Source: Macrostomum lignano
Lineage: Eukaryota
Direction of reading: 5' to 3'
DNA length: 34,875 bases
Assembly: GCA_002269645.1 (NCBI GenBank)
Contig: NIVC01001717.1
Location: 1 to 34,875, forward strand
In this document: positions 1,039 to 26,502 of the stretch, piece after piece
Layout: each line of letters begins with the position of its first letter
Numbering within the stretch: the stretch's first letter is position 1
Notes under the pieces: generated by a model
Database searches by the model: none
What the model saw: the letters and a program-made list of their open reading frames with translations, nothing else
Told to the model about the DNA's origin: nothing
Position numbers and translations under genes: made by a program

Positions 1039-4000
1039 TTACTCTGCCTCCGCCATGAGAGCGGACACAAAAATGCGCCTGAGGATGGGCTGGCGGCACA
1101 GCGGGCAGAGGCTCAGGCCAGTCGAGCAGGCCTCGCAGCAGCAGACGTGGCCGCAATTCAAGAACAGCGTGTCCGGCGTAGCGTCCATGCAGACGCAGCA
1201 GCCGGTTGATTCGGCTGTCCGGGCTCGAACCACGGACGCCGGCTGAGGCTCGCTAGCCGGGGCCACTAGCGCCATAGGCGGCGCGCTCGGCTCCAGCTTC
1301 TCTCTACACGCGGCGGCTTCTTCATCAAATTTATCCGGCGGATGGCCAGACTCCTTGTTGTCGTTCTCAGCCTCGCTGTCGTCAAGATCGTCGCCTAGAG
1401 CGGCCAGCTCGGCGATGATGGCTCGCCGGACGCCCAGCTCCCGGATGCCGATGGTGTCGCGCAGGTCGGCGTCGTCGGCGCACAGTCGTAGCCGCTTTAA
1501 GTTGAGCACGCGGTGGCGCAGGAATTGCGGCTCGTAGGACTGCAACGAGAATGGGATTTGTTTTCACAGTTGCTATGCGATTCTTATTCGCCTGAGACTG
1601 AGGATTCGAGCTTGTGAGCGCCATAGAGATTTGTAGGATGGTTGCGGACAAACTGACGTCACGCTTTTGGCGACATCACCGCACAAACCGCAGCTGAGAT
1701 TAAAGATCTGAGCAAGCAGTTTGAGGATCGGTGCTTTGGGATTAGGGATCTGAGCTAGGATTTTGAGCATCTGAGCTGGGATTTTGAGCATCTGAGCTAG
1801 GATTTTGAGGATCTGAGCTGGGATACTGAGCAACTGAGCTAGGATTTTGAGGATCTGAGCTGGGGTATTGAGGATCTGAGCTGGGGTATTGAGGATCTGA
1901 GCCGGGGTATTGAGGATCTGAGCTGGGATTAGGGATCTCAGCTAGGATTTTGAGGATCTGAACTGGGATTTTGAGCATCTGAGCTAGGATTTTGAGGATC
2001 TGAGCTGGGGTATTGAGGATCTGAGCTGGGATTAGGGATCTCAGCTAGGATTTTGAGCATCTGAACTGGGATTTTGAGGATCTGAGCTGGGATTTTGAGG
2101 ATCTGAGCTGGGAGATTGAGGATCTGAGCTGGGATATTGAGGATCTGAGCTGGGAGATTGAGGATCTGAGCTGGGATATTGAGGATCTGAGCTGGGATAT
2201 TGAGGATCTGAGCTGGGATATTGAGGATCTGAGCTGGGTTATTGAGGATCTGAGCTTGAGTACGCCATAGATTGACAGGATTTCAGACTGTGAACTGAGT
2301 TCTGCACGAGCAAAAATCTTAGCAAAGCACAGCCTGACTGCAAGCTGCTAACCTGCGCCCCGGCCTTAGCCAACAGTTTGGTCAGTCTGACGCTCAGCCC
2401 GGGCTCCAGCTGTCCAGGCCGGCGCTCCATCAGCCGCTGATACTGCACCAGCCAATAGTCGATCTGGTCAGCTTTGCGCTGCTCTTCCAGCTCCGCCAGC
2501 CGTTTGGTGAGCTCGTTGGCTCGCTTGGTCCGCTCGTCCATGAGCTGCTGCAGCAGGCGGATCAGGGCGTCGCGCTTGGCGGCCAGTGCGGTCAGGCTGG
2601 CGTCAGAACGGTCGCGACGGCGCTGCATCTCGGCTCGGGTGATGGCGCACAGCTCGCGCTCGATCAGCGACACCTGCGGATGAGATGTTGAGATTTAGTA
2701 GGATAATGGCCAATTCTAAGCAAAGCATCAAAAAAGTGCAGAATCGAACCTCCTGACAGAGTCGCTGACTCTTGTAGTCGCGCTGAATCAGCAGCTGGGC
2801 GAACGCCTCCCGCTGCCTGCTCTGCTCCTCGGCTATGCTGCTGACCAGGCCCCGCCTTTGGCTGGCGTGGGTGTCCAGGGCCCGCTCGACCTCTTCGGTG
2901 CGCTCGCCAGCCTTGGCCGCGGCGGTGACAGCGTCGGCCCGGTCAGCTTCCACTCGGCGTCGGCGAGACTCCAACGAGTCGGACTCGGCCAGCAGTTTGT
3001 CCATAGAGGCCAGGATCTCCGACCGGTGCTGGGCAGTCAGCTCCGTCAGGGACTCCTCCTGGTCCTGCTGCTCCAGCTGTTCAAGGATGGCCTCCCTACC
3101 GCTGGCGCGGACGTTCCAATCCAGTAGGTGGCGGATCAGCCGATCGGCGCTGGACTCGGCCGCGCTGACGTCTTCAACTAGGCGTTGCCGATCTCGCTGG
3201 CGGGCGGCCTGGACGGCGGCCAAGTCCAGAGCCTGACCGTCGGCAGCGTCGGCGTCCAGCCTGTCAACGGCTGCCCGACGCTGCTCCTGGGATCGAGTAG
3301 CCAGAGCCAACTGGGCGCTGGAGTCCTCTTGAATCTGGCGCTCCAGCTCTTGGCGCTGCTGACGGCGCTGGGCGAGGACGCGCTCCTGCACCTGGACGCT
3401 GTCCTGTTTTGGGAAGCCAGTGGGGAAGATCTGACATCAAGCAGCTATGATGTAACCAATGACATCAGGCAGTTCTGGTGTATGCCCGATGACATCAAGC
3501 AGCTATGATGTAACCAATGACATCAGGCAGTTCTGGTGTATGCCCGATGACATCAAGCAGTTCTGATGTAACCAATGACATCAGGCAGTTCTGATATGCC
3601 CAAGGACATCAGGCAGTTTTGATATGCCCAATGACATCAGGCAGTTCTGATTTGTGCCCAAGGACATCAGGCAGTTCTGATTTGTGCCCAAGGACATCAG
3701 GCAGTTCTGATTTGTGCCCAAGGACATCAGGCAGTTCTGATTTGTGCCCAAGGACATCAGGCAGTTCTGATTTGTGCCCAAGGACATCAGGCAGTTCTGA
3801 TTTGTGCCCAAGGACATCAGGCAGTTCTGATTTGTGCCCAATGACATCAGGCAGTTCTGGTGTATGCCCGATGAGATCAGGCAGTTCTGATGTATGCCCG
3901 ATGACATCAGGCAGTTCTGGTGTATGCCCGATGACAACAGGCAGTTCTGATTTGTGCCCAAGGACATCAGGCAGTTCTGATTTGTGCCCAATGACATCAG

Positions 4001-7000
4001 GCAGTTCTGATTTGTGCCCAATGACATCAGGCAGTTCTGATTTGTTCCCAATGACATCAGGCAGTTCTGATTTGTGCCCAATGACATCAGGCAGTTCTGG
4101 TGTATGCCCGATGACATCAGACAGTTCTGGTGTATACCCGATGACATCAGGCAGTTCTGATGTATGCCCGATGACATCAGGCAGTTCTGGTGTATGCCCG
4201 ATGACATCAGGCAGTTCTGATGTATGCCCGATGACATCAGGCAGTTCTGATGTATGCCCGATGACATCAGGCAGTTCTGGTGTATGCCCGATGACATCAG
4301 GCAGTTCTGGTGTATGCCCGATGACATCAGGCAGTTCTGGTGTATGCCCGATGACATCAGGCAGTTCTGGTGTATGCCCGATGACATCAGGCAGTTCTGG
4401 TGTATGCCCGATGACATCAGGCAGTTCTGGTGTATGCCCGATGACATCAGGCAGTTCTACGTGACCCTTGCATTCTAATGAGTTATACAAAACAATAACT
4501 ACGAGCTACTTACTGAACGTTCAAAGCAACAGAAACGTGAATGCATGTCTTGCAACAAGTGGATGCAGGATTAAGCGTAACAAAGGTACAATATATATTG
4601 TGTAGCGCACTTACGGATTGAATTGAGAATTTGCTAAATCTGATTCAATACCAATATTTGCGAGCAGCTCAAGTAGAGGGAGAGGAGAGAACACACGGGG
4701 ATAGGGAGAATAGAAGTCTCAGTACTCATCACTCGAGTGCCCAAGCATACATCCAGTGGCGTACACACAGGCTAGGCCAGAAGTACTCCCAGAGAGAGAG
4801 AGAGAGGGCCATCCCCCTTATCGATTCAGAGGGCTGCAGGAGCATAGAGAATTTCTGGGGCACAGAGAAACGAGACGAATGCTGGCCCAGGGAGCTTTGG
4901 ACCAATCCAACAAAATGTACAACGCCTAGTGAGTGCGCGGCGAGGCAGTCACCGCCAAGTCAAGATACTAACCTCGTAACAGAGATCAAAAAGGAGCCAC
5001 TAACTTTTAACTGCTGACTTCTGACTGACTGACCGACTGGTTGAAAGTACTAATGTTTCTTTCTTCTTTTTTTCTGAAACTCCTTAATGACTGTATAAGT
5101 CTCTCCAAGATTTTGGGCACTCTTAAACGCGAAAATGTCACTCCATAGATCTAGAATATCACTCTTCATGGACAGTGTCTCTATCGAGATTTCAGGCACT
5201 CCTAAGTCGAAAATGTCACTCCATAGATCTAGAATGTCGCTCTTCAAAAATTCAAAAACAGCGTGACTCTATCGAGATTTCGGGCACTCCTAAGTTGAAA
5301 ATGTCACTCCATAGATCTAGAATGTCACTCTTTATGGACAGTGTGTCTCTATCTGGATGTGAGGCACTCCTAAATTTGAAAATGTCACTCTTTAAAGTCA
5401 GCGTGACTCTATCGAGATTTCGGGCACTCCTAAGTCGAAAATGTCACTCCATAGATCTAGAATGTCGCTCTTCAAAAACAGCGTGACTCTATCGAGATTT
5501 CGGGCACTCCTAAGTCGAAAATGTCACTCCATAGATCTAGAATGTCGCTCTTCAAAAACAGCGTGACTCTATCGAGATTTCGGGCACTCCTAAGTCGAAA
5601 ATGTCACTCCATAGATCTAGAATGTCGCTCTTCAAAAACAGCGTGACTCTATCGAGATTTCGGGCACTCCAAAAGTCGAAAATGTCACTCCATAGATCTA
5701 GAATGTCGCTCTTCAAAAACAGCGTGACTCTATCCAGATTTCGGGCACTCCTAAGTCGAAAATGTCACTCCATAGATCTAGAATGTCGCTCTTCAAAAAC
5801 AGCGTGACTCTATCGAGATTTCGGGCACTCCTAAGTCGAAAATGTCACTCCATAGATCTAGAATGTCGCTCTTCAAAAACAGCGTGACTCTATCGAGATT
5901 TCGGGCACTCCTAAGTCGAAAATGTCACTCCATAGATCTAGAATGTCGCTCTTCAAAAAACAGCGTGACTCTATCCAGATTTCGGGCACTCCTAAATCGA
6001 AAATGTCACTCCATAGATCTAGAATGTCGCTCTTCAAAAACAGCGTGACTCTATCCAGATTTCGGGCACTCCTAAGTCGAAAATGTCACTCCATAGATCT
6101 AGAATGTCGCTCTTCAAAAACAGCGTGACTCTATCGAGATTTCGGGCACTCCTAAGTCGAAAATGTCACTCCATAGATCTAGAATGTCGCTCTTCAAAAA
6201 AACAGCGTGACTCTATCCAGATTTCGGGCACTCCTAAGTCGAAAATGTCACTCCATAGATCTAGAATGTCGCTCTTCAAAAAAACAGCGTGACTCTATCG
6301 AGATTTCGGGCACTCCTAAGTCGAAAATGTCACTCCATAGATCTAGAATGTCGCTCTTCAAAAACAGCGTGACTCTATCGAGATTTCGGGCACTCCAAAA
6401 GTCAAAAATGTCACTCTTCAAGAATGGTATCGAGAGAGAAAATGGCACTCCACAGACTTCAAAACAGTACAGTTCAATTTAGTTCAATCCCCACCTCGTA
6501 GTCGTTAGCCAGCTCCTTCAGCAGCGGGCCACTGTTGCCACCACCGCCCATGCCTGGGCCACCGCCGCTGCTTTCAACCTCGGGCGAAGGCAGAATGTGC
6601 AGAGCAAACCTACTAGGCGGTTCGTACTGAACACCTGCCTCTGAAATGTAAGCGATGGTGCGAAAAACTTATTAGGAAAACTTATACTTGCAGTTTCGAA
6701 TTTGTCGCAATAGAAACAAAAAAACACTTTGCTCACCCTTGCACAGGAAACGCATAATGGCTTCAGTGCCTTGGGCGCAGATTTCTAAAACGTGCGCGTG
6801 ATAAATAATATTGTTACATGACGAAAAGTAATATTTCACGATAATTATTAATATTAAATAGTTGTCGAATATCCGACACTGACCCTTGCTAGGATAGGTG
6901 AATCCCTGCGGAGACAGAGTCAAATTCTCCAGAGTGCGGGCCTGGCAGATGGTGCGCGGCAGCTGGCGCATTGGATTGCCGGCAATGTCCAGTAGTTTAA

Positions 7001-8960
7001 GGCTGGCCAAGCCAAGAAATATCTCGGATGGCAGCGACTTCAACCGGTTGTCTGCGGTCGGTGTATATGGCTAACTAGGTCCATAGGTAGTGGTATAAAT
7101 TTTACAACTGCCTACTTATAGTCTAGCAATGCCAGATATTGGCTTGCTTGCACTTTTAGTTACCGATAATAAAACTGATAAGGCATGTCTAAGCTTGTAC
7201 TTTTATCTAATCGACCTGGTACTAGTCTAGTCAAATTCGTACTTTCATCTAATCGATCTTTTACGATTCTTATCTAATCGATCTTTTACGATTCTTATCT
7301 TATCGATCTCTTACGATTCTTATCTAATCGATCTTTTACGATTCTTATCTAATCGATATTTTGCGATTCTCATCTAATCGATCTTTTGCGATTCTTATCT
7401 AATCGATCTTTTGCGATTCTTATCTAATCGATCTTTTGCGATTCTTATCTAATCGATCTTTTGCGATTCTTATCTGATCAATCTTTTACGATTCTCATCT
7501 AATCGATCTTTTGCGATTCTTATCTAATCGATATTTTGCAATTCTTCTCTAATCGATATTTTGCGATTCTCATCTAATCGATCTTTTACGATTCTCATCT
7601 AATCGATCTTTTACGATTCTTATCTAATCGATCTCTTACGATTCTTATCTAATCGATCTTTTGCGATTCTTATCTAATCGATATTTTGCGATTCTCATCT
7701 AATCGATCTTTTGCGATTCTTATCTAATCGATCTTTTGCGATTCTTATCTAATCGATCTTTTGCGATTCTTATCAAATCGATATTTTACGATTCTTATCT
7801 AATCGATCTTTTGCGATTCTCATCTAATCGATCTTTTACGATTCTTATCTAATCGATATTTTGCAATTCTTCTCTAATCGATATTTTGCGATTCTTATCT
7901 AATCGATCTGGTACAATTCTCTTCAAAATTTGTACTTTTATCTAATCGGTCAGGAACAATTATCTTCAAATTTGTACTTTTATCTAACCGATCTGGTCAT
8001 ATTTGTACTTTTAATGAATAAGTCTGCACTCGTCTACTAAAACTTGTACTTGTATCAAATCGATCGCGTAGTCGACTTGCACTGGGCCATAAAGAATGAA
8101 TGATGAAGAGATTAATGAGATTCTCAGAATTGCTGCTCACCTCTCAGGCCGAGAGTCTGCAAATTGCGCATGCTCTGCATAGAGGCCGGTAGCCAAGTTA
8201 ATTTATTCCTGTCCAAGCTGAGTACCTGGAGATAAAATGCAAAAAAAATCGTTTTAATTGTCGACTAATCGTTAATTCTGATTTCAACCGTATCTATGGA
8301 CTCAGTAATAAAGTTTATAGACTGTTAGCTGGATTTATCGAATTCAAACAATGTCGAGACAAGTCGCCAAAGAATCGCCTACGAGTCAAATTGAGGCGTG
8401 CTGGAGTCGTATCGAATTAATATGAATTAGTATCACATTTCGCATTTATAAAAACTCTGTTTAGTCTGCTTGAGTTAGCAGAAATTTAATCGCTAACACA
8501 ACGACTCTTAAACGATTTTTTGCGCGACTCTTACGATTCTGCAACTCACGTGATGCGCTCGCGACTTAAAAAGTCACAAGAGTCGTTTCACTCAAGCGAA
8601 TCTTAAGAAGGCTAATACTAGATTAGTAAAGCGCATTTAAAACTAACAGACCTGCAGACAGGTGAGACAGCCGATATTGTTAGGCAGGTCGGTGAGCTCG
8701 TTATTGCGCAAATCCAGCACTCGCAGATTCGCTAAGCTGGTGAGTTTAGACTCAGGTCCCAGGCTAGTTAACCAGTTGTCATTGAGCAGCAGGGCCTCTT
8801 TGCGTAGCACCCGGATTTGAGTATAGACTCCAGTGGGCACCTCGGTTAGTTCGCATTCAGACAGGTCGAATGGTGACGACTCGCTCTCCTGGGCTAGATA
8901 GAGTTTACGCTCTAGGCGACGCTTGCCAGCCTCTGTCTGCTTGCGGCCGAACAGTGGCAT
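1039..8960 (-). CDS. LRSAM1: LRSAM1 (LRR, coiled-coil, SAM and RING E3 ubiquitin ligase), 8 coding exons, about 743 aa
   Basis: Exons (minus): 8960-8652, 8225-8141, 7051-6884, 6784-6737, 6640-6495, 3403-2750, 2673-2353, 1539-1039. All introns are GT..AG with matching phases, 2232 nt total. The N-terminus MPLFGRKQTEAGKRRLERKLYLAQE resembles human [27 protein letters not shown]. It is followed by LRRs, FLCKEAGVQYEPPS, a long coiled coil, the YWLVQYQRL motif, a SAM-like segment and the C-terminal RING CCVCMDATPDTLFLNCGHVCCCEACSTGLSLCPLCR. Confidence 0.95.
1696..2256. repeat. Minisatellite, 21-bp unit GAGGATCTGAGCTGGGATATT, in LRSAM1 intron 7
   Basis: About 26 tandem copies, degenerate at the left edge. 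Confidence 0.95.
3432..4458. repeat. Minisatellite, 30-bp unit ATGACATCAGGCAGTTCTGGTGTATGCCCG, in LRSAM1 intron 5
   Basis: About 34 copies in two main variant blocks (ATTTGTGCCCAAGG type and GTGTATGCCCGATG type). Confidence 0.95.
5115..6450. repeat. Tandem repeat, 80-bp unit built from four diverged ~20-bp monomers, in LRSAM1 intron 5
   Basis: ATGTCACTCC recurs every 80 bp (e.g. 5521, 5601); about 16 copies. Confidence 0.95.
7245..7910. repeat. Minisatellite, 25-bp unit TTATCTAATCGATCTTTTGCGATTC, in LRSAM1 intron 2
   Basis: About 26 copies; degenerate TTGTACTTTTATCTAATCG relics flank the array on both sides. Confidence 0.95.
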
Positions 8961-9720
8961 TCTCTGATGGCTCTTGTGTAGCTTGGGCAGCGGTAGTAGG
9001 TTAGCAAAGCTGCAATAGCAAAACGCATAACTTTTATAGAGGCATATCGGCTCATTAAAGTGCAGGATTTCGGATCATGGGGTCAATTCAATTTGTTTCC
9101 TTGCAAACTGTAAAAATAGCCATATACTAAATTTTCCCATGGCCTATTCACATCCATATCGAATTAATTTCCCATCACATTCCCTAACTTAACTCAGATG
9201 CCAACAGTTCCTTCATCATTCACTATAATATAGTGGGGAAGTTAAGAACGACAGCAATAGTTAAACCTGTCACTTTATTAAATGTGTCTCATTTTCATAT
9301 TAACTTTAGCCCCCACCACCCCAACCACACATGGTGCATGTGGTATTGAAAATCTCTGTTGCTATAGTCCTTAATCCCCAGGGACATAAGAGCTACCCTT
9401 GTATTGAAAGTAAGAATATTCAACTAAACTTGAGCCCAAAGCACATGATATGCAAGTGGCTTAAGATATCTCTGCTACCTGAGTTCATGACCCAGTGGCT
9501 ATAGAAGGAAAAGTGTCAAAATGCATACTTTAGGATGCACTACTCAAAAACGCAGCTCCCTAGTCTTTGCCCCTCCCTTCTAGTAATGTTAATTTTGAGA
9601 TTTTGACATTTTTAATGGAGATTGAATTCAAATATTATAACCACAGAATATCGTGACTATAACTATAAGCAACATAGATCCTACATAGATAGATTTAAAA
9701 AAAATTCCTATATATATTTA

Positions 9721-16036: not shown

Positions 16037-17313
16037 GTGTGGGTCTTCAGAAGCCAGCGTCATTAAGACAGCAGGCAGTCGACGAACTACCGGAGTGCGC
16101 GCGCCTTGTCGGTAGGGCGCGCCTTGTAGCTTAGTCTTTACCTTCTTTAGCTCAGTTAAAGTAGACAAAATTTCTGCTCATAATTCTGAGAACGAGATTC
16201 AATTTAATTTTATCCAATAACGAACCGTAGGTAGAGCTGTCGTTCACCTTTGCGAAGGGTGGTAAAAAATTCGTCCCCAGGCTATAGCGATCCATTCAGG
16301 TAGTATATATCATCCTTTGAATAATGAATACATAGAACTAATTATAAGCAGACAAGAAATGAATTAGAATTGCGTTTTGTTTAAATAAAATTGAGTAATG
16401 CACGTAGGAAGTCAGGAAGAAAGAATTCGGTAAGTTTATATTGCGGCAGGCAAGTAACCCGTTTTGTGTCTGACAAGACGCATCTTTACCGAATGAATCC
16501 AGACCGCGACTGCGTAATGCCGCGATTACGGTTTTCTCTCAAATTGCAAAAGCTGTTTAAGTATTTCTTAAGCTGCATTGTGGTTGCAAAACGGATAACG
16601 AAAACTCTAATTTGAGCTGTTACGCTAGCGTAACATGATCGCGTCTGAATTTGAATGAACTCGAAGTGACTGCATCAATTTAAGAGGCTTCTATTAGTGG
16701 ATCAGGCACTTAGCGGCTCAAATTCGGTGACTAGAAGAGACTCGTGGAACCCGCGAACAGCTAAAGTAAAGCTTTGGAGTCCGAAAGTTGCACTGCAGCC
16801 TGACAATACACGAAAGTATATAACTGTTCCACATTCTGAGCTATTCACACCCACGGCACAGAGTGTGTACACATGTTTGACCATGAGAAAGTCAGAGCCC
16901 GTGTAAACTTTATGTAGGCCTATCCATGTGCGTTCTCAGGGGTCACAGCGGAACGGGCATTACTTGACTTATCCACAGGGGCTCCAGGCATCTGGATACA
17001 GCGGGGAGGCGTTGCATGCTAATCCCTGGCGACCACGGTCAGCTGGTGCCTGTGTCCTCAGCGCGGTCCCGCTCTGAAGAGTCCAGGAGGCTTGGTGTTG
17101 GCACCACTTACGATGGCTTGATTCTAGACTGGAGGCTTCAGTCACATGAATATTGATGACATGTCCGTCTCCTGGCGATTTTGTCCGATTGTGAGTGCCC
17201 TGTCGAGTCCGATCGGTAATGCCCGGACTACAGGTGGCCTTGGCTCGATCTATGGTCACCGACTTCGCTCAGCCAATCGCGACAGTCGAGTTGTGCGGTC
17301 TGAAGCGGCCGTC

Positions 17314-17321
17314 TATTTAAA
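17314..17321 (+). promoter_or_regulatory. TATA-like box TATTTAAA upstream of the peptide gene
   Basis: Lies about 100 nt upstream of ATG 17416; support is position only. Confidence 0.35.
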
Positions 17322-17415
17322 GTCGGAGATTTTTCCCAACCAGACTCCGCCCGATCATCAGCTCGAATCGACAACTCACTGCAGCTAGGATAAGAAGTTC
17401 CCCGAGACAAGCTCA

Positions 17416-17808
17416 ATGGCTCAAAAGCTCGTCCAGCATCTTGCTTTGATGCAGCTGCTGCTTCTGCTGCTCCTGCTGCACAGCGGCGGCGGCGGCTGTA
17501 GCAGCGCCGGCCTCGATCTCGACGCCGGCCTTGAGACAGAGGACGACAGCGCTGCAGTCGTCGGCCTCGAGACCGACAAGAGATGTGAGGCTTTGCCTGT
17601 CTAGCTCGTATCAAATTGACATTGAAATAAACTTAATTGACATAATTGACACTAACTGACATCGGCAGACATGCACACCGGCCTGTCCTACTGCACCAGG
17701 CTGTGCCACTACAACTTCGGCCGGCACGCCAGATGCCGCGGCTATTTCAATTCGGTCAGCCGCGGCTGCGACTGCGTCTGCGCCGCGTTCAACGGCTGGG
17801 GCCGTTGA
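17416..17808 (+). CDS. Prepro-peptide: secreted 6-Cys cationic defensin/mytilin-like peptide, 2 exons, 102 aa
   Basis: Exon 1 17416-17584 encodes a signal peptide, an acidic pro-region and KR. The 84-nt intron runs GTGAGG..ACTAAC..GGCAG. Exon 2 17669-17808 gives mature YMHTGLSYCTRLCHYNFGRHARCRGYFNSVSRGCDCVCAAFNGW followed by GR and stop. Confidence 0.85.
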
Positions 17809-17928
17809 CTGACCAGTATCGAGACTGCTCGAGCCCAATGCTCGTGTCTGCAACCGCGGCTTTGCAAAACGTTTCACTGACAATCATAAAGTTCCTGACG
17901 ATCTGGAACAGCGAGATCATAGTTCTAG

Positions 17929-17945
17929 AATAAAACGATAATAAA
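17929..17945 (+). terminator. Tandem polyadenylation signals (AATAAA x2) of the peptide gene
   Basis: AATAAA at 17929-17934 and 17940-17945, about 120 nt after the stop. Confidence 0.6.
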
Positions 17946-18059
17946 CGAGAAGAGTAGTTATGCTAGACTAATTAAAGAGACTTATCAGTTTTTTTCTTGG
18001 AAATAAGTATGTTTTTGTTTTAGAAAGTCTCATCTCTCTGGTATTTAAAAGCTTTTGAG

Positions 18060-18801
18060 ACCCTCTGTTGCTTGAAAGCATGCAGCTCTCTGCGGTTTGA
18101 AAGCAACAGCTCTCTGCGGTTTGAAGTCAACAGCTCTCTGAGGTTTGAAGGCAACAGCTCTCTGCGGTTTGAAGGCAACAGCTCTCTGCGGTTTGAAGGC
18201 AACAGCTCTCTGCGGTTTGAAGGCATGCAGCTCTCTGCGGTTTGAAGGCAACAGCTCTCTGCGGTTTGAAGGCAACAGCTCTCTGCGGTTTGAAGGCAAC
18301 AGCTCTCTGCGGTTTGAAGGCAACAGCTCTCTGCGGTTTGAAGGCAACAGCTCTCTGCGGTTTGAAGGCAACAGCTCTCTGCGGTTTGAAGGCAACAGCT
18401 CTCTGCGGTTTGAAGGCAACAGCTCTCTGCGGTTTGAAAGCATGCAGCTCTCTGCGGTTTGAAGGCAACAGCTCTCTGCGGTTTGAAGGCAACAGCTCTC
18501 TGCGGTTTGAAGGCAACAGCTCTCTGCGGTTTGAAGGCAACAGCTCTCTGCGGTTTGAAGGCAACAGCTCTCTGCGGTTTGAAGGCAACAGCTCTCTGCG
18601 GTTTGAAGGCAACAGCTCTCTGCGGTTTGAAGGCATGCAGCTCTCTGCGGTTTGAAGGCAACAGCTCTCTGCGGTTTGAAGGCAACAGCTCTCTGCGGTT
18701 TGAAGGCAACAGCTCTCTGCGGTTTGAAGGCATGCAGCTCTCTGCGGTTTGAAGGCAACAGCTCTCTGCGGTTTGAAGGCAACAGCTCTCTGCGGTTTGA
18801 A
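18060..18801. repeat. Minisatellite, 24-bp unit GCAACAGCTCTCTGCGGTTTGAAG with interspersed 25-bp GCATGC variants
   Basis: About 30 near-perfect copies; variants at 18078, 18223, 18440, 18633 and 18730. Confidence 0.95.
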
Positions 18802-19364: not shown

Positions 19365-20878
19365 CATGTAGGATCAATGTAGGATCATGTCATATAGGAT
19401 CATGTAGGATCATGTGGGATCGTGTAGAATCATGTCATATAGGATCGTGTAGAATCATGTCATGTAAGATCATGTAGGATCACGTCATGTAGGATCGTGT
19501 AGGATCATGTAATGTAGGATCGTGTAGAATGATGTAATGTAGGATCGTGTAGGATCATGTTATGTAGGATCGTGTAGAATGATGTCATGTAGGATCGTGT
19601 AGGATCATGTTATGTAGGATCGTGTAGAATCATGTAATGTAGGATCGTGTAGGATTATGTCATGTAAGATCGTGTAGAATCATGTAATGTAGGATCGTGT
19701 AGAATGATGTCATGTAGGATCGTGTAGAATGATGTCATGTAGGATCGTGTAGAATGATGTCATGTAGGATCGTGTAGGATTATGTTATGTAGGATCGTGT
19801 AGAATCATGTAATGTAGGATCGTGTAGGATTATGTCATGTAAGATCATGTAGGATCACGTCATGTAGGATCGTGTAGGATTATGTCATGTAAGATCGTGT
19901 AGAATCATGTAATGTAGGATCGTGTAGAATGATGTCATGTAGGATCGTGTAGGATCATGTTACGTAGGATCGTGTAGGATCATGTAATGTAGGATCGTGT
20001 AGGATCATGTTATGTAGGATCGTGTAGAATGATGTCATGTAGGATCGTGTAGGATTATGTCATGTAAGATCATGTAGGATCACGTCATGTAGGATCGTGT
20101 AGGATTATGTCATGTAAGATCGTGTAGAATCATGTAATGTAGGATCGTGTAGAATGATGTCATGTAGGATCGTGTAGGATCATGTTATGTAGGATCGTGT
20201 AGAATCATGTAATGTAGGATCGTGTAGAATGATGTAATGTAGGATCGTGTAGGATCATGTTATGTAGGATCGTGTAGAATGATGTCATGTAGGATCGTGT
20301 AGGATTATGTCATGTAAGATCGTGTAGAATCATGTAATGTAGGATCGTGTAGGATTATGTCATGTAGGATCGTGTAGAATGATGTCATGTAGGATCGTGT
20401 AGAATGATGTCATGTAGGATCGTGTAGAATGATGTCATGTAGGATCAATGTAGGATCATGTCATGTAGGATCGTGTAGAATCATGTAATGTAGGATCGTG
20501 TAGAATCATGTAATGTAGGATCGTGTAGAATATGTCATGTAGGATCAATGTAGGATCATGTCATATAGGATCGTGTAAGATCATGTCATGTAGGATCGTG
20601 TAAGATCATGTCATGTATGATCGTGTAGAATCATGTCATGTAGGATCGTGTAGAATCATGTAATGTAGGATCGTGTAGAATATGTCATGTAGGATCAATG
20701 TAGGATCATGTCATATAGGATCGTGTAAGATCATGTCATGTAGGATCGTGTAAGATCATGTCATGTAGGATCGTGTAAGATCATGTCATGTATGATCGTG
20801 TAAGATCATGTCATGTAGGATCGTGTAAGATCATGTCATGTAGGATCGTGTAGGATCACGTCATGTAAGATCGTGTGT
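19365..20878. repeat. Minisatellite, 25-bp unit TGTAGGATCGTGTAGAATCATGTCA
   Basis: About 60 copies, built from TGTAGGATC subunits. Confidence 0.95.
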
Positions 20879-21444: not shown

Positions 21445-22530
21445 TGGGTCAGTGCGGAGATGGGTCAGTGAGGGAGGTGGGTCAGTGAGGGAGGTGGGTC
21501 AGTGAGGGAGGTGGGTCAGTGAGGGAGGTAGGCTCAGTGGGTAAGTGGGAGAGGTGGGTCAGTGAGGGAGGTGGGTCAGTGAGGGAGGTAGGCCAATGGG
21601 TCAGTGAGGGAGGTGGGTCAGTGGGTAAGTGGGAGAGGTGGGTCAGTGAGGGAGGTGGGTCAGTGAGGGAGGTGGGTCAGTGAGGGAGGTGGGTCAGTGA
21701 GGGAGGTAGGCCAATGGGTCAGTGAGGGAGGTGGGTCAGTGGGTAAGTGGGAGAGGTGGGTCAGTGAGGGAGGTGGGTCAGTGAGGGGGTGGGTCAGTGA
21801 GGGAGGTGGGTCAGTGAGGGAGGTGGGTCAGTGAGGGAGGTGGGTCAGTGAGGGAGGTGGGTCAGTGAGGGAGGTGGGTCAGTGAGGGAGGTGGGTCAGT
21901 GAGGGAGGTGGATCAGTGTGAGAGGTAAGTCAGCGAGGGAGGTGGGTCAGTGAGGGAGGTAGGCCAATGGGTCACTGAGGGAGGTGGGTCAGTGGGTAAG
22001 TGGGAGAGGTGGGTCAGTGAGGGAGGTGGGTCAGTGGGTAAGTGGGAGGTGGGTCAGTGAGGGAGATAGGTCAGTGGGTAAGTGGGAGGTGGGTCAGTGA
22101 GGGAGGTAGGTCAGTGGGTAAGTGGGAGAGGTGGGTCAGTGAGAGAGGTGGGTCAGTGGGTCAGTGGGGGAGGTGGGTCAGTCGTGAGAGGTGGGTCAGT
22201 GGGTCAGTGAGGGAGGTGGGCCAATGGGTCAGTGAGAGAGGTGGGTCAGTGAGGAAGGTAGGCCACTGGGTCAGTGAGGGAGGTGGGTCAGTGGATCAGT
22301 GTGGGAGCTGGGTCAGTGTGTCAGTGAGAGAGGTGGGTCAATGGATCAGTGAGAGAGGTGAGTCAGTGAGGAAGGTGGGTCAGTGGGTCAGTGGAGGAGT
22401 GGGTCAGTGGGGGAGGTGGGTCAGTGGGGAGGTGGGTCAGTCGGGGAGGTGGGTCAGTGGGTCAGTGGGGGAGGTGGGTAAGTGAGTGAGGGAGGTGGGT
22501 CAATGAGATAGGTGGGTCAGTGGGTCAGAT
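21445..22530 (+). repeat. G-rich minisatellite, 17-bp unit GGGTCAGTGAGGGAGGT
   Basis: About 60 copies with variants; strong G/C strand skew. Confidence 0.95.
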
Positions 22531-23568: not shown

Positions 23569-26502
23569 CTACAATTGCGACTGCCGATAAGCCGCCGGCA
23601 GGCGCACAGATTCAAAGCTGCTGCCGCGGTCGCTGCCGTCTCCGGCCTCCGACCCCGACGACGCTGCCGATTCAGACGAGGACGCAGTCGATGCGGTCGC
23701 TTCGCCGTCAGCTTGCCGCCGCTTCTGTCGCCGCCGACTCCGCCGCCGTTTCTGCTGCTTCTGCTGTTGCTGCTGCTTGCGCTGACCGTTGCTGCTCCCG
23801 GCGGGAGGCCGCTTCTGCGGCGCGAACCGGAGTCGCCGATCGTCCTCAGTGGCGAAGGCGGCCGGATCCAGCCGGCGGGCGGCCAGCGCTTCAAACAGCT
23901 TGCCGCCGGCCGGGGTAGCGGAGGTCTCGCAGCCGGCGCCAAGCTCGGCGTAAAATGGCGATTGGGCGAGGTCGGGAGGCTGGCCAAGCGTCGGCGCGGG
24001 TTCTTCTGCAGCAGCTGCTCGACGGTGTAGCGGCACTGCCAGCTCAGCCGGCCGGGCGTCTCGTATTCGTGACCGCGGATCATCTGCGCCATCTGCCGGT
24101 GCGACCGGGCGCCGTGCAGCGGGAACTGCGGGGAGAGGTGTGGGATTGGTGTGGGGTGTGAGGTGTGGGATTAGTGTGGGTATGAGGTTTGGGATTAGTG
24201 TGGGGTATGAGGTGTGGGGTGTGAGATTTGTGTGGGATTGGTGTGGGTTGTGAGATGTATTGGTGTGGGTTGTGAATGATTGGTGAGATGATTGAATTAC
24301 ACGTTGAACAAAACAGAATCTACACGTGAACAGAAAGAGCCAGATTGTGAATCACAGAATCTACACGTGAACAGAAGGAGCCAGATTGTGAATCACAGAA
24401 TCTACACGTGAACAGAAAGAGCCAGATTGTGAATCACAGAATCTACACGTGAACAGAAGAGCACAGATTGTGAATCACAGAATCTACACGTGAACAGAAA
24501 GAGCCAGATTGTGAATCACAGAATCTACACGTGAACAGAAAGAGCCAGATTGTGAATCACAGAATCTACACGTGAACAGAAGGAGCCAGATTGTGAATCA
24601 CAGAATCTACACGTGAACAGAAAGAGCCAGATTGTGAATCACAGAATCTACACGTGAACAGAAAGAGCCAGATTGTGAATCACAGAATCTACACGTGAAC
24701 AGAAAGAGCCAGATTGTGAATCACAGAATCTACACGTGAACAGAAAGAGCCAGATTGTGAATCACAGAATCTACACGTGAACAGAAAGAGCCAGATTGTG
24801 AATCACAGAATCTACACGTGAACAGAAAGAGCCAGATTGTGAATCACAGAATCTACACGCTAGAACAGAGATACATAAAGACCGTGAAAGCACAGACAAC
24901 GCACCCGCATAGGTGAGGGTGCCGCAGATAGTCCTAGTGTTTTGTCCTCGCTTAAGCCACTTGCACAATCCGAAGTCCACCAGGACCGGATGGCCGGCAG
25001 CGTCCAGTACGACATTCTCCAGCTTCAAGTCCCGGAAGATCACACCGCGGCTATGCAGAAAGTCCAAGCAGCAGGCCAGTTCGGCAACATAGAACCTGGC
25101 CAGAGGCTCCGAATAGCGGCCGTGCCTGCGCCAGTCGGCAAACAGCTCCCCATTAGGCAGGAACTGCAGCAGCAGGTAGAGCCGCTTCCTAGTCTGCCAG
25201 TGGCACTGCAGAGCGGCCACGAAAGTCGAATAGCCGATAGCCAGTTGGACTCCGACTTCGTCTTTGCTTTGGCGGACGACGCCGTGGCCCTGGGATAGTA
25301 GGCGGGCCTTGTCGATCACCTTCAACGCGTACAGCTGCTTGTCATCCTCGGAGCGAACTTTTAACACGTTGCCGAATGCGCCGGCAGAGATCACGTCGAG
25401 TACCTGAGCGCATGCATAAGATGATTCGATTTTTATGTTAAATACGAGCATACATGCGCGCGAGGTCTACTGCAAGTAGAAATGAAAACATTTTACATAG
25501 GGAGACGAAGATTTTAGAATCAGATATTTACGAACTATAATAAGTGTATAGATGGGCCACTTAGGCTTATTGACTAGATAAAACAGTTTCACTACTTTCA
25601 GTTCAGTAGCAAAGAAGAACATGTAAGCTATTTTAAGAAAAGAAAAAGCAACTGGAAAGACTTGTTGACGTAAAAAGTAACTTGCTATTGGTTGGTGCAA
25701 GCTCCATTAAGATGTGCATCACAGCAGCTTTAGGTGGAACACAGAGTAAGGCCAATAAAATAGATGGGTGCAAGGGCGCCGTTAAGCTAATAGTTAGGTG
25801 GGCCAATAAATGAGCTTTGTTTAAAATAAATTAAAACGCTTCCATATTACTTGCTGCTGAACTGAAAGTAGCTTACACGTAAATGTGCTGAATGGCACAC
25901 CTAGTTATTATACAGTATCCAGTCCAGTTACTATCACATGCAGGAGATTGGACCAAATTTTTGGAATCGAACCCCCGGGTCCTCCTCTGACGCTTCCAAG
26001 CTCACTTCAAGCTCGCCGAGTTCGTGCGGCCCCGGTCGCACGGGGAACTCCGGCAGGAACAGCGACTCGATGAACGGCACGGGCCATTTCGACTTCGATC
26101 CGCCAAACGGATCGCCAAGTGTAGATTGTTGAATGCACGACGGCTGCCGCGATTCCAGCGGTCAGCCAGCTCAGAAACTGGCGCTGCTGAGCCAGCCATA
26201 ATCTGATGCTGTTGCTCAGGCTGCGGCTGCTGCTGCTGATGCTCAGACTCCAGCTCCGGTTCCGGTGGAGTTGCCAATCGATTTTGCTCGGCCCCGCTAA
26301 CCAGCTCGTCAGCGTCCACGCCGTCAGCTCTGGCGACGCCGAGCCCCGACGAGGCCGCCCGGCCGCTGTGCGACCTGAAGCTCAGGCGGGAGGCCCAGCG
26401 GCGGATGCGGCGAAAAGACGACTGGCGCAGGCGGTGCAGCGAGGCGAAGCTGTGCTCTCGGGCACCCCCACGCTCGTAAACGACGCCCTGCCGGTTGCCC
26501 AT
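23569..26502 (-). CDS. RSKR: RSKR/SgK494-like (S6 kinase-like, AGC) Ser/Thr kinase; disrupted as assembled
   Basis: Exon 26502-26006 starts MGNRQG and contains the family motif SKSKWPVPFIESLFLPEFP (human EWPVPQFINLFLPEFP). Exon 25403-24905 has ISAGAFGNV, YALKV, FRDLKLEN, DFG and ICGTLTYA. Exon 24125-23569 has FPLHGARSH..QLLQKNPRRRL. Frameshifts are needed near 26134 and 23975, and no APE/DWW exon is present. Confidence 0.85.
24316..24860. repeat. Minisatellite, 41-bp unit CACAGAATCTACACGTGAACAGAAAGAGCCAGATTGTGAAT, in a kinase intron
   Basis: About 13 near-identical copies. An adjoining degenerate GT-rich tract spans about 24135-24290. Confidence 0.95.

Follow-up and report, generated by a model that had tools for sequence, protein, structure and literature searches.

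The segment from position 17416 to 17808 on the forward strand of the window, the 34,875-nucleotide stretch of Macrostomum lignano DNA analysed here, is a real two-exon gene that encodes a small secreted cationic six-Cys peptide. Its family comprises four paralogue groups in the same genome. As to processing, folding and function, which we infer, we lean towards a secreted prepropeptide that would be cut after a Lys-Arg (KR) pair to give a peptide of some 44-46 aa that is cationic. This peptide would be held by three disulfides in a CS-alpha-beta-like helix-hairpin with a non-canonical third bridge, and would serve as a lineage-restricted host-defence effector. Up to now the protein has been catalogued twice by automatic procedures, and no earlier study has treated the family or assayed the peptide. 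New here are the linking of the four paralogue groups, the definition of a family signature together with its processing site, and the recognition of a predicted non-canonical disulfide array.

Gene structure

An initial reading of the DNA, made from the sequence alone and referred to below as the sequence-only reading, had proposed a spliced gene in this segment with an 84-nt intron. In silico splicing confirmed the intron base for base, with its GTGAGG, ACTAAC and CAG signals, and the deposited gene model was identical. The TATA-like box and the two AATAAA hexamers said to flank the gene were likewise present. The features of the gene and of its predicted product are listed here by their positions in the window.

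17314-17321, forward strand: TATA-like box TATTTAAA, about 95 nt upstream of the ATG, found by pattern search as a motif alone
17416, forward strand: start ATG, preceded by an in-frame stop
17416-17584, forward strand: coding exon 1, 169 nt, with its last base opening a split Tyr codon; equal to the deposited PAA64764.1 model
17416-17493, forward strand: predicted signal peptide, aa 1-26, MAQKLVQHLALMQLLLLLLLLHSGGG, from the translation and a SignalP 4.1 result of Irvine et al. 2023
17494-17583, forward strand: acidic pro-piece, aa 27-54, followed by K55-R56; 8 D/E in LDLD...LETD and one unpaired Cys
17585-17668, forward strand: phase-1 intron, 84 nt, GTGAGG...ACTAAC (17651-17656)...CAG, 38% GC
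17626-17631, forward strand: third AATAAA, within the intron
17669-17808, forward strand: coding exon 2, 140 nt including the TGA at 17806-17808; codes for the six-Cys domain
17695-17784, forward strand: Cys core C-x3-C-x9-C-x10-C-x-C-x-C with the family-invariant F, G and G-Y-x-N
17800-17805, forward strand: C-terminal Gly-Arg, possibly signalling amidation, which would leave a Trp-amide
17929-17934 and 17940-17945, forward strand: two AATAAA hexamers of putative polyadenylation type, about 120-135 nt past the stop

The spliced coding sequence comprised 309 nt and translated into a prepropeptide of 102 aa, MAQKLVQHLALMQLLLLLLLLHSGGGGCSSAGLDLDAGLETEDDSAAVVGLETDKR followed by YMHTGLSYCTRLCHYNFGRHARCRGYFNSVSRGCDCVCAAFNGWGR. 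With the intron retained, the reading frame would run into a stop after ...KRCEALPV, eight codons on. Upstream of paralogue D the sequence TATAAAAG was found at a distance similar to that of the TATA-like box of the window gene. A scan for sigma-70 promoters and terminators, of no relevance in a eukaryote, gave nothing.

The gene structure stands far above chance, because 11 further loci keep the exon structure, the phase and position of the intron, the KR and the six Cys, and because a gene product with the identical sequence has been deposited. The exons had a GC content of 63-65%, and GC3 was 83% compared to 38% GC in the intron, which speaks against an ORF arisen by chance, a pseudogene or an error of annotation. 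The transcript origin of the gene models in this assembly argues against such a non-functional reading as well. The Mlig_3_7 models derive from mapping RNA-seq and transcript assemblies onto the genome (PMC5730564), and the 17584/17669 splice junction thus has indirect transcript support.

Annotation and earlier catalogues

The gene had been described as hidden, and this did not hold. The spliced model had already been deposited, and the identical 102-aa protein was found in GenBank three times (PAA64764.1, PAA65225.1 and PAA71963.1, each a hypothetical protein BOX15_Mlig002610g1/g3 of Macrostomum lignano) as well as in UniProt, where UniRef100_A0A267EUX9 is named 'Invertebrate defensins family profile domain-containing protein'. 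For groups B and C, proteins have been deposited as well, and the UniProt/UniRef names of paralogues A, B and C read either as above or 'INVERT_DEFENSINS domain-containing protein'. The automatic names imply a match to PROSITE PS51378 (INVERT_DEFENSINS), as we take the wording 'Invertebrate defensins family profile' to be the name that UniProt gives automatically to such a match. No match in the protein collections was found for any of the three allelic forms of group D, which is therefore apparently unannotated.

The second catalogue is that of Irvine et al. 2023, who searched 33 flatworm species, both M. lignano assemblies included, by HMM and BLAST (PMC10414684). Their conclusion was that flatworms have no genes for CS-alpha-beta, big-defensin or myticalin peptides, and they termed it surprising that CS-alpha-beta peptides should be lacking (PMC10414684). 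In their S5 File BOX15_Mlig002610g1 is listed as 'Ungrouped' AMP-like peptide #504, for which a 76-aa product was predicted without KR cleavage and 72.7% of the predictors returned an AMP-like result; Mlig034330g2/g3, our paralogue B, forms 'Same genome' group 149 (PMC10414684). The gene can thus not be called undescribed, as had been suggested. Single-genome and ungrouped entries were left out of the prioritisation and never tested, and the four paralogue groups linked here are unlinked in that catalogue (PMC10414684).

The literature that was searchable contained no description of Macrostomum defensins. In the full-text literature and in M. lignano RNA-seq supplements, searched with the gene IDs, nothing was found on expression, induction, the peptide or its activity.

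Prepropeptide and predicted processing

The composition of the precursor agreed with what had been read from the DNA. The pro-piece LDLDAGLETEDDSAAVVGLETD contains 8 D/E and is followed directly by the KR. The peptide after the KR, YMHTGLSYCTRLCHYNFGRHARCRGYFNSVSRGCDCVCAAFNGWGR, has 46 aa, a Cys spacing of x3/x9/x10/x1/x1, 3 His and 1 Asp, and ends in Gly-Arg before the stop. The five Arg counted earlier are correct once the terminal Arg is trimmed, but six are present when it is included. BOX15_Mlig002610g1 was SignalP 4.1-positive in the S5 File of Irvine et al. 2023, with the cleavage placed before GCSSAG... (PMC10414684).

K55-R56 was invariant in 8 of 8 aligned precursors, and the pro-region around it varied. 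After removal of the signal peptide, a protease of the furin or prohormone-convertase type would cleave behind the KR and release a product of roughly 44-46 aa whose net charge would be +3 to +4, as calculated for the mature forms of all four paralogue groups, each of which is cationic. In the window paralogue only, the terminal Arg would then be trimmed and the Gly converted, which would leave a C-terminal Trp-amide.

The same processing would suit a signalling peptide, that is a neuropeptide, hormone or pheromone cut by a prohormone convertase at the KR, amidated in the window paralogue and acting on a receptor. The invariance of the KR throughout the paralogues and the Gly-Arg-stop of the window gene both speak for such a peptide, and amidated peptides are numerous in flatworms. 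We nevertheless regard it as rather unlikely. The amidation signal is missing in three of the four groups, and the CxxxC/CxC scaffold combined with the positive charge fits defence peptides; the divergence of the family, presented in the next section, points in the same direction.

A paralogue family in Macrostomum lignano

A search for paralogues in the genome had been proposed along with the sequence-only reading, and it was productive. The genome, of which the window is one complete contig, was searched in six frames (764.4 Mb, 5,269 contigs), and exon 2 matched 11 other loci. The resulting 12 loci fall into four paralogue groups of three copies each.

Group A, the window gene (BOX15_Mlig002610): window and contigs C1124 and C1672, 100% identical over about 2 kb
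Group B: contigs C440, C1338 and C1855
Group C: contigs C1419, C1493 and C725
Group D: contigs C942, C1234 and C1236

Redundancy and neopolyploidy are documented for the M. lignano genome in two studies (PMC5730564; PMC10733133), and the finding of three copies per group fits both.

In the reconstructed models of all four groups a signal peptide and a short pro-piece were followed by a KR ending exon 1. The intron was in each case a canonical GT..AG phase-1 intron, of 84, 228, 330 and 79-80 nt in the four groups, and split a codon 8 residues before the first Cys. Exon 2 coded for C-x3-C-x9-C-x10-C-x-C-x-C in every group. From the alignments the invariant residues were the KR, a His at position -6, all six Cys, an F-G behind the second of these and a G-Y-x-N behind the third, which gives the family signature H-x5-C-x3-C-x3-F-G-x4-C-x-G-Y-x-N-x5-C-x-C-x-C; the HFG/GYxN motif is conserved across the family. 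The C-termini differed, with ...NGW-GR-stop in A, SNYP in B, PRPAGN in C and TKPAPA in D. Only paralogue A had the Gly-Arg signal and a strongly acidic pro-piece, and none of the three other groups had either. Therefore they are no defining features of the family, contrary to the architecture put forward at the outset.

Identity between the groups was 30-58%. In a core of 37 codons, dN/dS was 0.34 for C vs D, 0.28 for A vs B and about 1 for A vs C/D. This pattern points to a scaffold under constraint whose loops diversify, and the rise to about 1 between A and C/D is usual for effector families. No dN/dS was obtained among the three copies of the window gene, because these are 100% identical over about 2 kb. 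Three identical copies carry no selection signal, and to this extent they would be compatible with a non-functional stretch. We consider that explanation very improbable, since in 12 intact loci the Cys, the KR, the splice sites and the phase of the intron have been kept at an identity of 30-58%, and dN/dS between the nearest groups is about 0.3.

Outside M. lignano no relative was found by an exhaustive hmmsearch of 1.84 billion representative proteins, and a word-indexed search of 5.8 billion proteins returned M. lignano proteins only. Three partial matches to translated repeats (P0009-P0011, E about 3e-4) covered 10-17 residues with the domain missing, and were discarded as spurious. The lack of relatives among the 1.84 billion representatives is more in keeping with an effector that evolves fast than with a hormone that is conserved. 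Conserved neuropeptide precursors differ from the present family in this respect, as no orthologues of the latter were detected in other annotated proteomes. The fast divergence, with 30-58% identity between groups and dN/dS up to about 1, counts against a signalling peptide too.

Predicted fold and disulfide pattern

Two different paralogues were modelled independently with AF2, on an MSA of 5 sequences. For peptide A a helix at residues 7-17 and strands at 23-28 and 33-38 were predicted at a pLDDT of 73. For paralogue C the helix spanned residues 5-21 and the strands 28-32 and 37-41, at a pLDDT of 77 with 82-88 in the core. Both models are of moderate confidence and are read here for the order of secondary structure. 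They shared one topology, a single helix followed by a two-stranded antiparallel sheet, in which the helix contains the CxxxC and the second hairpin strand the CxCxC.

In the numbering of the window peptide, C9-x3-C13 and C34-x-C36(-x-C38) were invariant in 4 of 4 paralogue groups. The cysteine-stabilised helix motif, defined by a CxxxC and a downstream CxC (PMC5116183), is thus present by sequence, with a putative pairing. It corresponds to C3, C4, C8 and C9 of the ten-Cys reference array of Tarr, in which a bond C2-C6 between a Cys N-terminal to the helix and the first beta-strand completes the fold (PMC5116183). Between the KR and the CxxxC no Cys was found in any paralogue, and an extra Cys follows the CxC instead. 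The canonical third disulfide, from an N-terminal Cys to strand 1, is therefore impossible in this family. In the register of the predicted hairpin Cys3 lies opposite Cys6, from which we infer the connectivity C1-C4, C2-C5, C3-C6. Accordingly drawn, the helix would be packed on the beta-hairpin with its CxxxC bonded to the first two Cys of the CxCxC, and the third disulfide, Cys3-Cys6, probably staples the base of the hairpin in the modelled structure.

The CS-alpha-beta signature that had been recognised in the DNA was thereby upheld in part. The CxxxC...CxC, the helix-hairpin in two AF2 models and the UniProt name support it, but the canonical N-terminal Cys is missing.

Comparison with invertebrate defensins

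The nearest known counterparts are the invertebrate (CS-alpha-beta) defensins, among them insect defensin A/sapecin (1ICA, 1L4V), MGD-1 (1FJN) and Cg-Def (2B68), catalogued as PROSITE PS51378 and Pfam PF01097. Like the invertebrate defensins, the flatworm peptide is predicted to be small, secreted and cationic, to derive from a prepropeptide, and to carry the CxxxC in a helix and the CxC on a beta-strand in the order helix-strand-strand. Its C-x3-C-x9-C spacing is exactly that of C16-C20-C30 in insect defensin A (sequence verified against 1ICA). Unlike those defensins it has no Cys N-terminal to the helix, the C2 of the Tarr array, and it has an extra Cys two residues past the CxC. With 10 residues its hairpin loop is longer than that of invertebrate defensins (about 5), and the GxC before the strand-1 Cys is absent, a C-x-G-Y-x-N following the strand-1 Cys instead.

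None of the searches gave a significant connection to CS-alpha-beta peptides. A Pfam scan of all paralogues, as mature peptides and as precursors at E<=10, returned no defensin or toxin family and only sub-threshold YacG and Sha_B_N noise. With PF01097 (Defensin_2) nothing in the genome exceeded the cut-off, and the weak matches included none of the 12 loci; no canonical defensin was detected by this search. Searches of PDB sequences with the single peptides and with the family profile gave nothing relevant. An HMM built from 8 PDB-verified defensins of insects, molluscs, scorpions and fungi scored the peptides between -3.7 and 0.2 bits, equal to shuffles with fixed Cys; the same HMM gave just 3.8 bits to mytilin B, a proven CS-alpha-beta peptide, and so has low power between subfamilies. 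The profile and fold check came out mixed: AF2 did produce a helix and then a hairpin, but hhalign against insect defensins gave a probability of 6%, and Foldseek of the two models against the PDB reached a best E of 1.9-2.6, with none at E<=0.001, in a comparison that has little power at about 45 aa. The nematode peptide ASABF (2D56) appeared at Foldseek rank 39 with E 6.5.

These negative results are of limited weight, because the HMM scores mytilin B at 3.8 bits and Foldseek is weak on 45-residue models. We concluded that the flatworm family is no close relative of any characterised CS-alpha-beta subfamily; the negatives do not show a different fold. A significant link to defensins was obtained neither by sequence nor by structure, which is a point in favour of the signalling peptide considered above.

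A six-Cys variant is known from the nematode ABF peptides. ASABF-6Cys-alpha resembles the flatworm peptide in having six Cys with which the canonical three pairs are impossible, and altered bonding has been assumed for it (PMC5116183). It differs in keeping another subset of the Cys, C3-C6, C8 and C9, and has no detectable sequence similarity to the flatworm peptide.

A secreted effector of another kind, either an ion-channel-modulating toxin or deterrent or a protein of reproductive or other gland secretions, we hold to be quite unlikely. M. lignano is not known to be venomous, which counts against a toxin, and no similarity to toxin families was found in Pfam or in the PDB. The gene IDs do not occur in the supplementary tables of a Macrostomum reproduction and positional RNA-seq study. 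In favour of this explanation, CS-alpha-beta-type scaffolds serve toxins and antimicrobial peptides alike and the two are indistinguishable by sequence (Tarr 2016, PMC5116183). Lineage-specific, rapidly diverging small secreted proteins are moreover typical of Macrostomum reproductive genes (PMC7336406). The host-defence reading, towards which we lean, would make the product a secreted antimicrobial effector from a fast-diverging, lineage-restricted defensin-like family.

With some hesitation, and as a possibility that we rate below the host-defence reading as a whole, the four Macrostomum groups may be the first genuine CS-alpha-beta peptides of the Platyhelminthes. They would then overturn the claim of Irvine et al. 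2023 that the superfamily is absent from flatworms, and would form a new subfamily. In it the ancestral bond between an N-terminal Cys and strand 1 would have been lost, its place taken by a hairpin staple from a C-terminal Cys (C1-C4, C2-C5, C3-C6), and one member would be a Trp-amide.

Relation to mytilin

The sequence-only reading had called the peptide mytilin-like, and this was not borne out. For the comparison the reference sequence of mytilin B was verified against PDB 2EEM. Mytilin has 8 Cys in the array C-x3-C-x3-C-x4-C-x11-C-x-C-x-C-x2-C, whereas the flatworm peptides have 6 Cys in C-x3-C-x9-C-x10-C-x-C-x-C, and the helix of mytilin B contains C-x3-C-x3-C in place of the flatworm C-x3-C. 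Common to both are the absence of a long N-terminal loop, the C-x(10-11)-C-x-C-x-C tail and the cationic character. The disulfides of mytilin are C2-C27, C6-C29, C10-C31 and C15-C34. The last of these lies at the base of the hairpin in mytilin B, where a disulfide is predicted for the flatworm peptide as well.

In a single BLASTP comparison with mytilin B only 6 residues were aligned, GYFNSV/GYYVSV, with E 0.19. When the mytilin sequence was shuffled with its Cys fixed, the window peptide gave p=0.61, which is average for the scaffold. Paralogues C and D lay slightly above the Cys-fixed shuffles of mytilin B, with p=0.02-0.04, uncorrected for 12 comparisons. That the window peptide is a true homologue of the mussel mytilins is thus hardly credible. 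The shared C-x10/11-C-x-C-x-C tail, the G-Y-[FY]-x-S-V stretch after a Cys and the values of paralogues C and D would speak for it. The result for the window peptide itself speaks against it, as do the 8 Cys with a C-x3-C-x3-C-x4-C helix region compared to the C-x3-C-x9-C of the family, and no mollusc protein appeared in the exhaustive profile search of 1.84 billion representatives. As the similarity is at the level of the scaffold and 6 Cys stand against 8, membership in the mytilin family was rejected. A 'hairpin-staple' design shared with mytilin is a reasonable analogy.

Implications

The antimicrobial peptides of flatworms are almost uncharted, and according to the main survey (PMC10414684) flatworms have no member of any classical lophotrochozoan AMP group, CS-alpha-beta peptides among them. 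The practical value of the present finding is modest, since the gene was already annotated and catalogued. If the CS-alpha-beta fold is true, a gap in the free-living flatworms would close and the published claim of absence (PMC10414684) would have to be qualified. Members whose Cys arrays are rearranged would moreover be seen to escape homology searches. M. lignano is a transgenic model amenable to RNAi, and the family would then offer a handle on epithelial immunity in this animal.

The locus and its copies

Coding exons of other genes were found in the window on both sides of the defensin-like gene BOX15_Mlig002610:

1039-1563, minus strand, C3HC4 RING finger exon (PF13920, E 1e-12)
6672-7070 and 8643-9074, minus strand, leucine-rich repeat exons (LRR_8/LRR_4)
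24771-25466, minus strand, protein kinase domain exon (PF00069, E 1e-31)

The coding exons adjoining the gene had no relation to defence peptides. We concluded that the gene stands alone and that no tandem AMP cluster surrounds the locus.

Over approx. 2 kb, including the intron and flanks, window positions 16300-18300 were 100% identical to two other genomic contigs, C1124 (~228300-230300) and C1672 (~120700-122700), and differences among the three copies started only in the repeat-rich flanks. A 24-bp tandem array at 18083-18801 (~30 copies, 96% matches) begins ~140 nt downstream of the poly(A) signals of the gene; its region varied in length among the three copies, which were elsewhere identical, with indel columns at 18300-18500. 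The identity of the copies is compatible with a very recent duplication (neopolyploidy) or with assembly redundancy. The window itself spans contig C1717 from end to end. Minisatellite arrays were numerous in the window, e.g. at 107-901, 3432-4458, 5381-6416, 19365-20876 and 21445-22528.

The paralogue A precursor contains a seventh, unpaired cysteine, Cys28 (window 17497-17499, context GGGGCSSAG), in the pro-piece directly past the predicted signal-peptide cleavage site. If cleavage occurs at the KR site, Cys28 would be lost along with the pro-piece.

Paralogues D and C

Group D was represented by three copies in the same assembly (G000), all of them intact:

C942, ~41988-42328 (L011, 1280-1620)
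C1234 (L012, 1281-1620)
C1236 (L013), minus strand

The 86-aa precursor reads MSASKAAVIIFLL[S/G]WLISAGQA[V/L]RRPSPMELSRTEVKRIRMD followed by THQAFVPFCSYRCKVHFGPERQCIGYFNPKTSVCYCVCTKPAPA; the intron measures 79-80 nt, and a TATAAAAG box lies upstream of the gene. None of the three allelic protein forms was present in a collection of 15 billion proteins. Group D thus looks like a true family member that has escaped annotation.

Paralogue C was met within an older-assembly UniProt entry, UniRef100_A0A1I8I6D2, named 'Apple domain-containing protein', a low-complexity model of 400 aa in which the paralogue's exon 1 is embedded together with the greater part of its exon 2 (…KRIRMDTHRAFVPFCTYRCEMHFGRERGCVGYVNQKEGNCL…). 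The gene model behind this entry is apparently mis-predicted or chimeric.

The family in a published catalogue

The S5 File of Irvine et al. 2023 (PMC10414684) lists BOX15_Mlig002610g1 (group A) and BOX15_Mlig034330g2/g3 (group B). Mature products were predicted there by signal-peptide cleavage alone, giving 76 aa for Mlig002610g1 and 62 aa for Mlig034330g2/g3, and the conserved KR site was left unused; groups A and B were not linked, still less C and D. Because the pipeline ignored the KR site and left the paralogue groups unlinked, Mlig002610g1 and Mlig034330g2/g3 were dropped as 'Ungrouped' / 'Same genome'.
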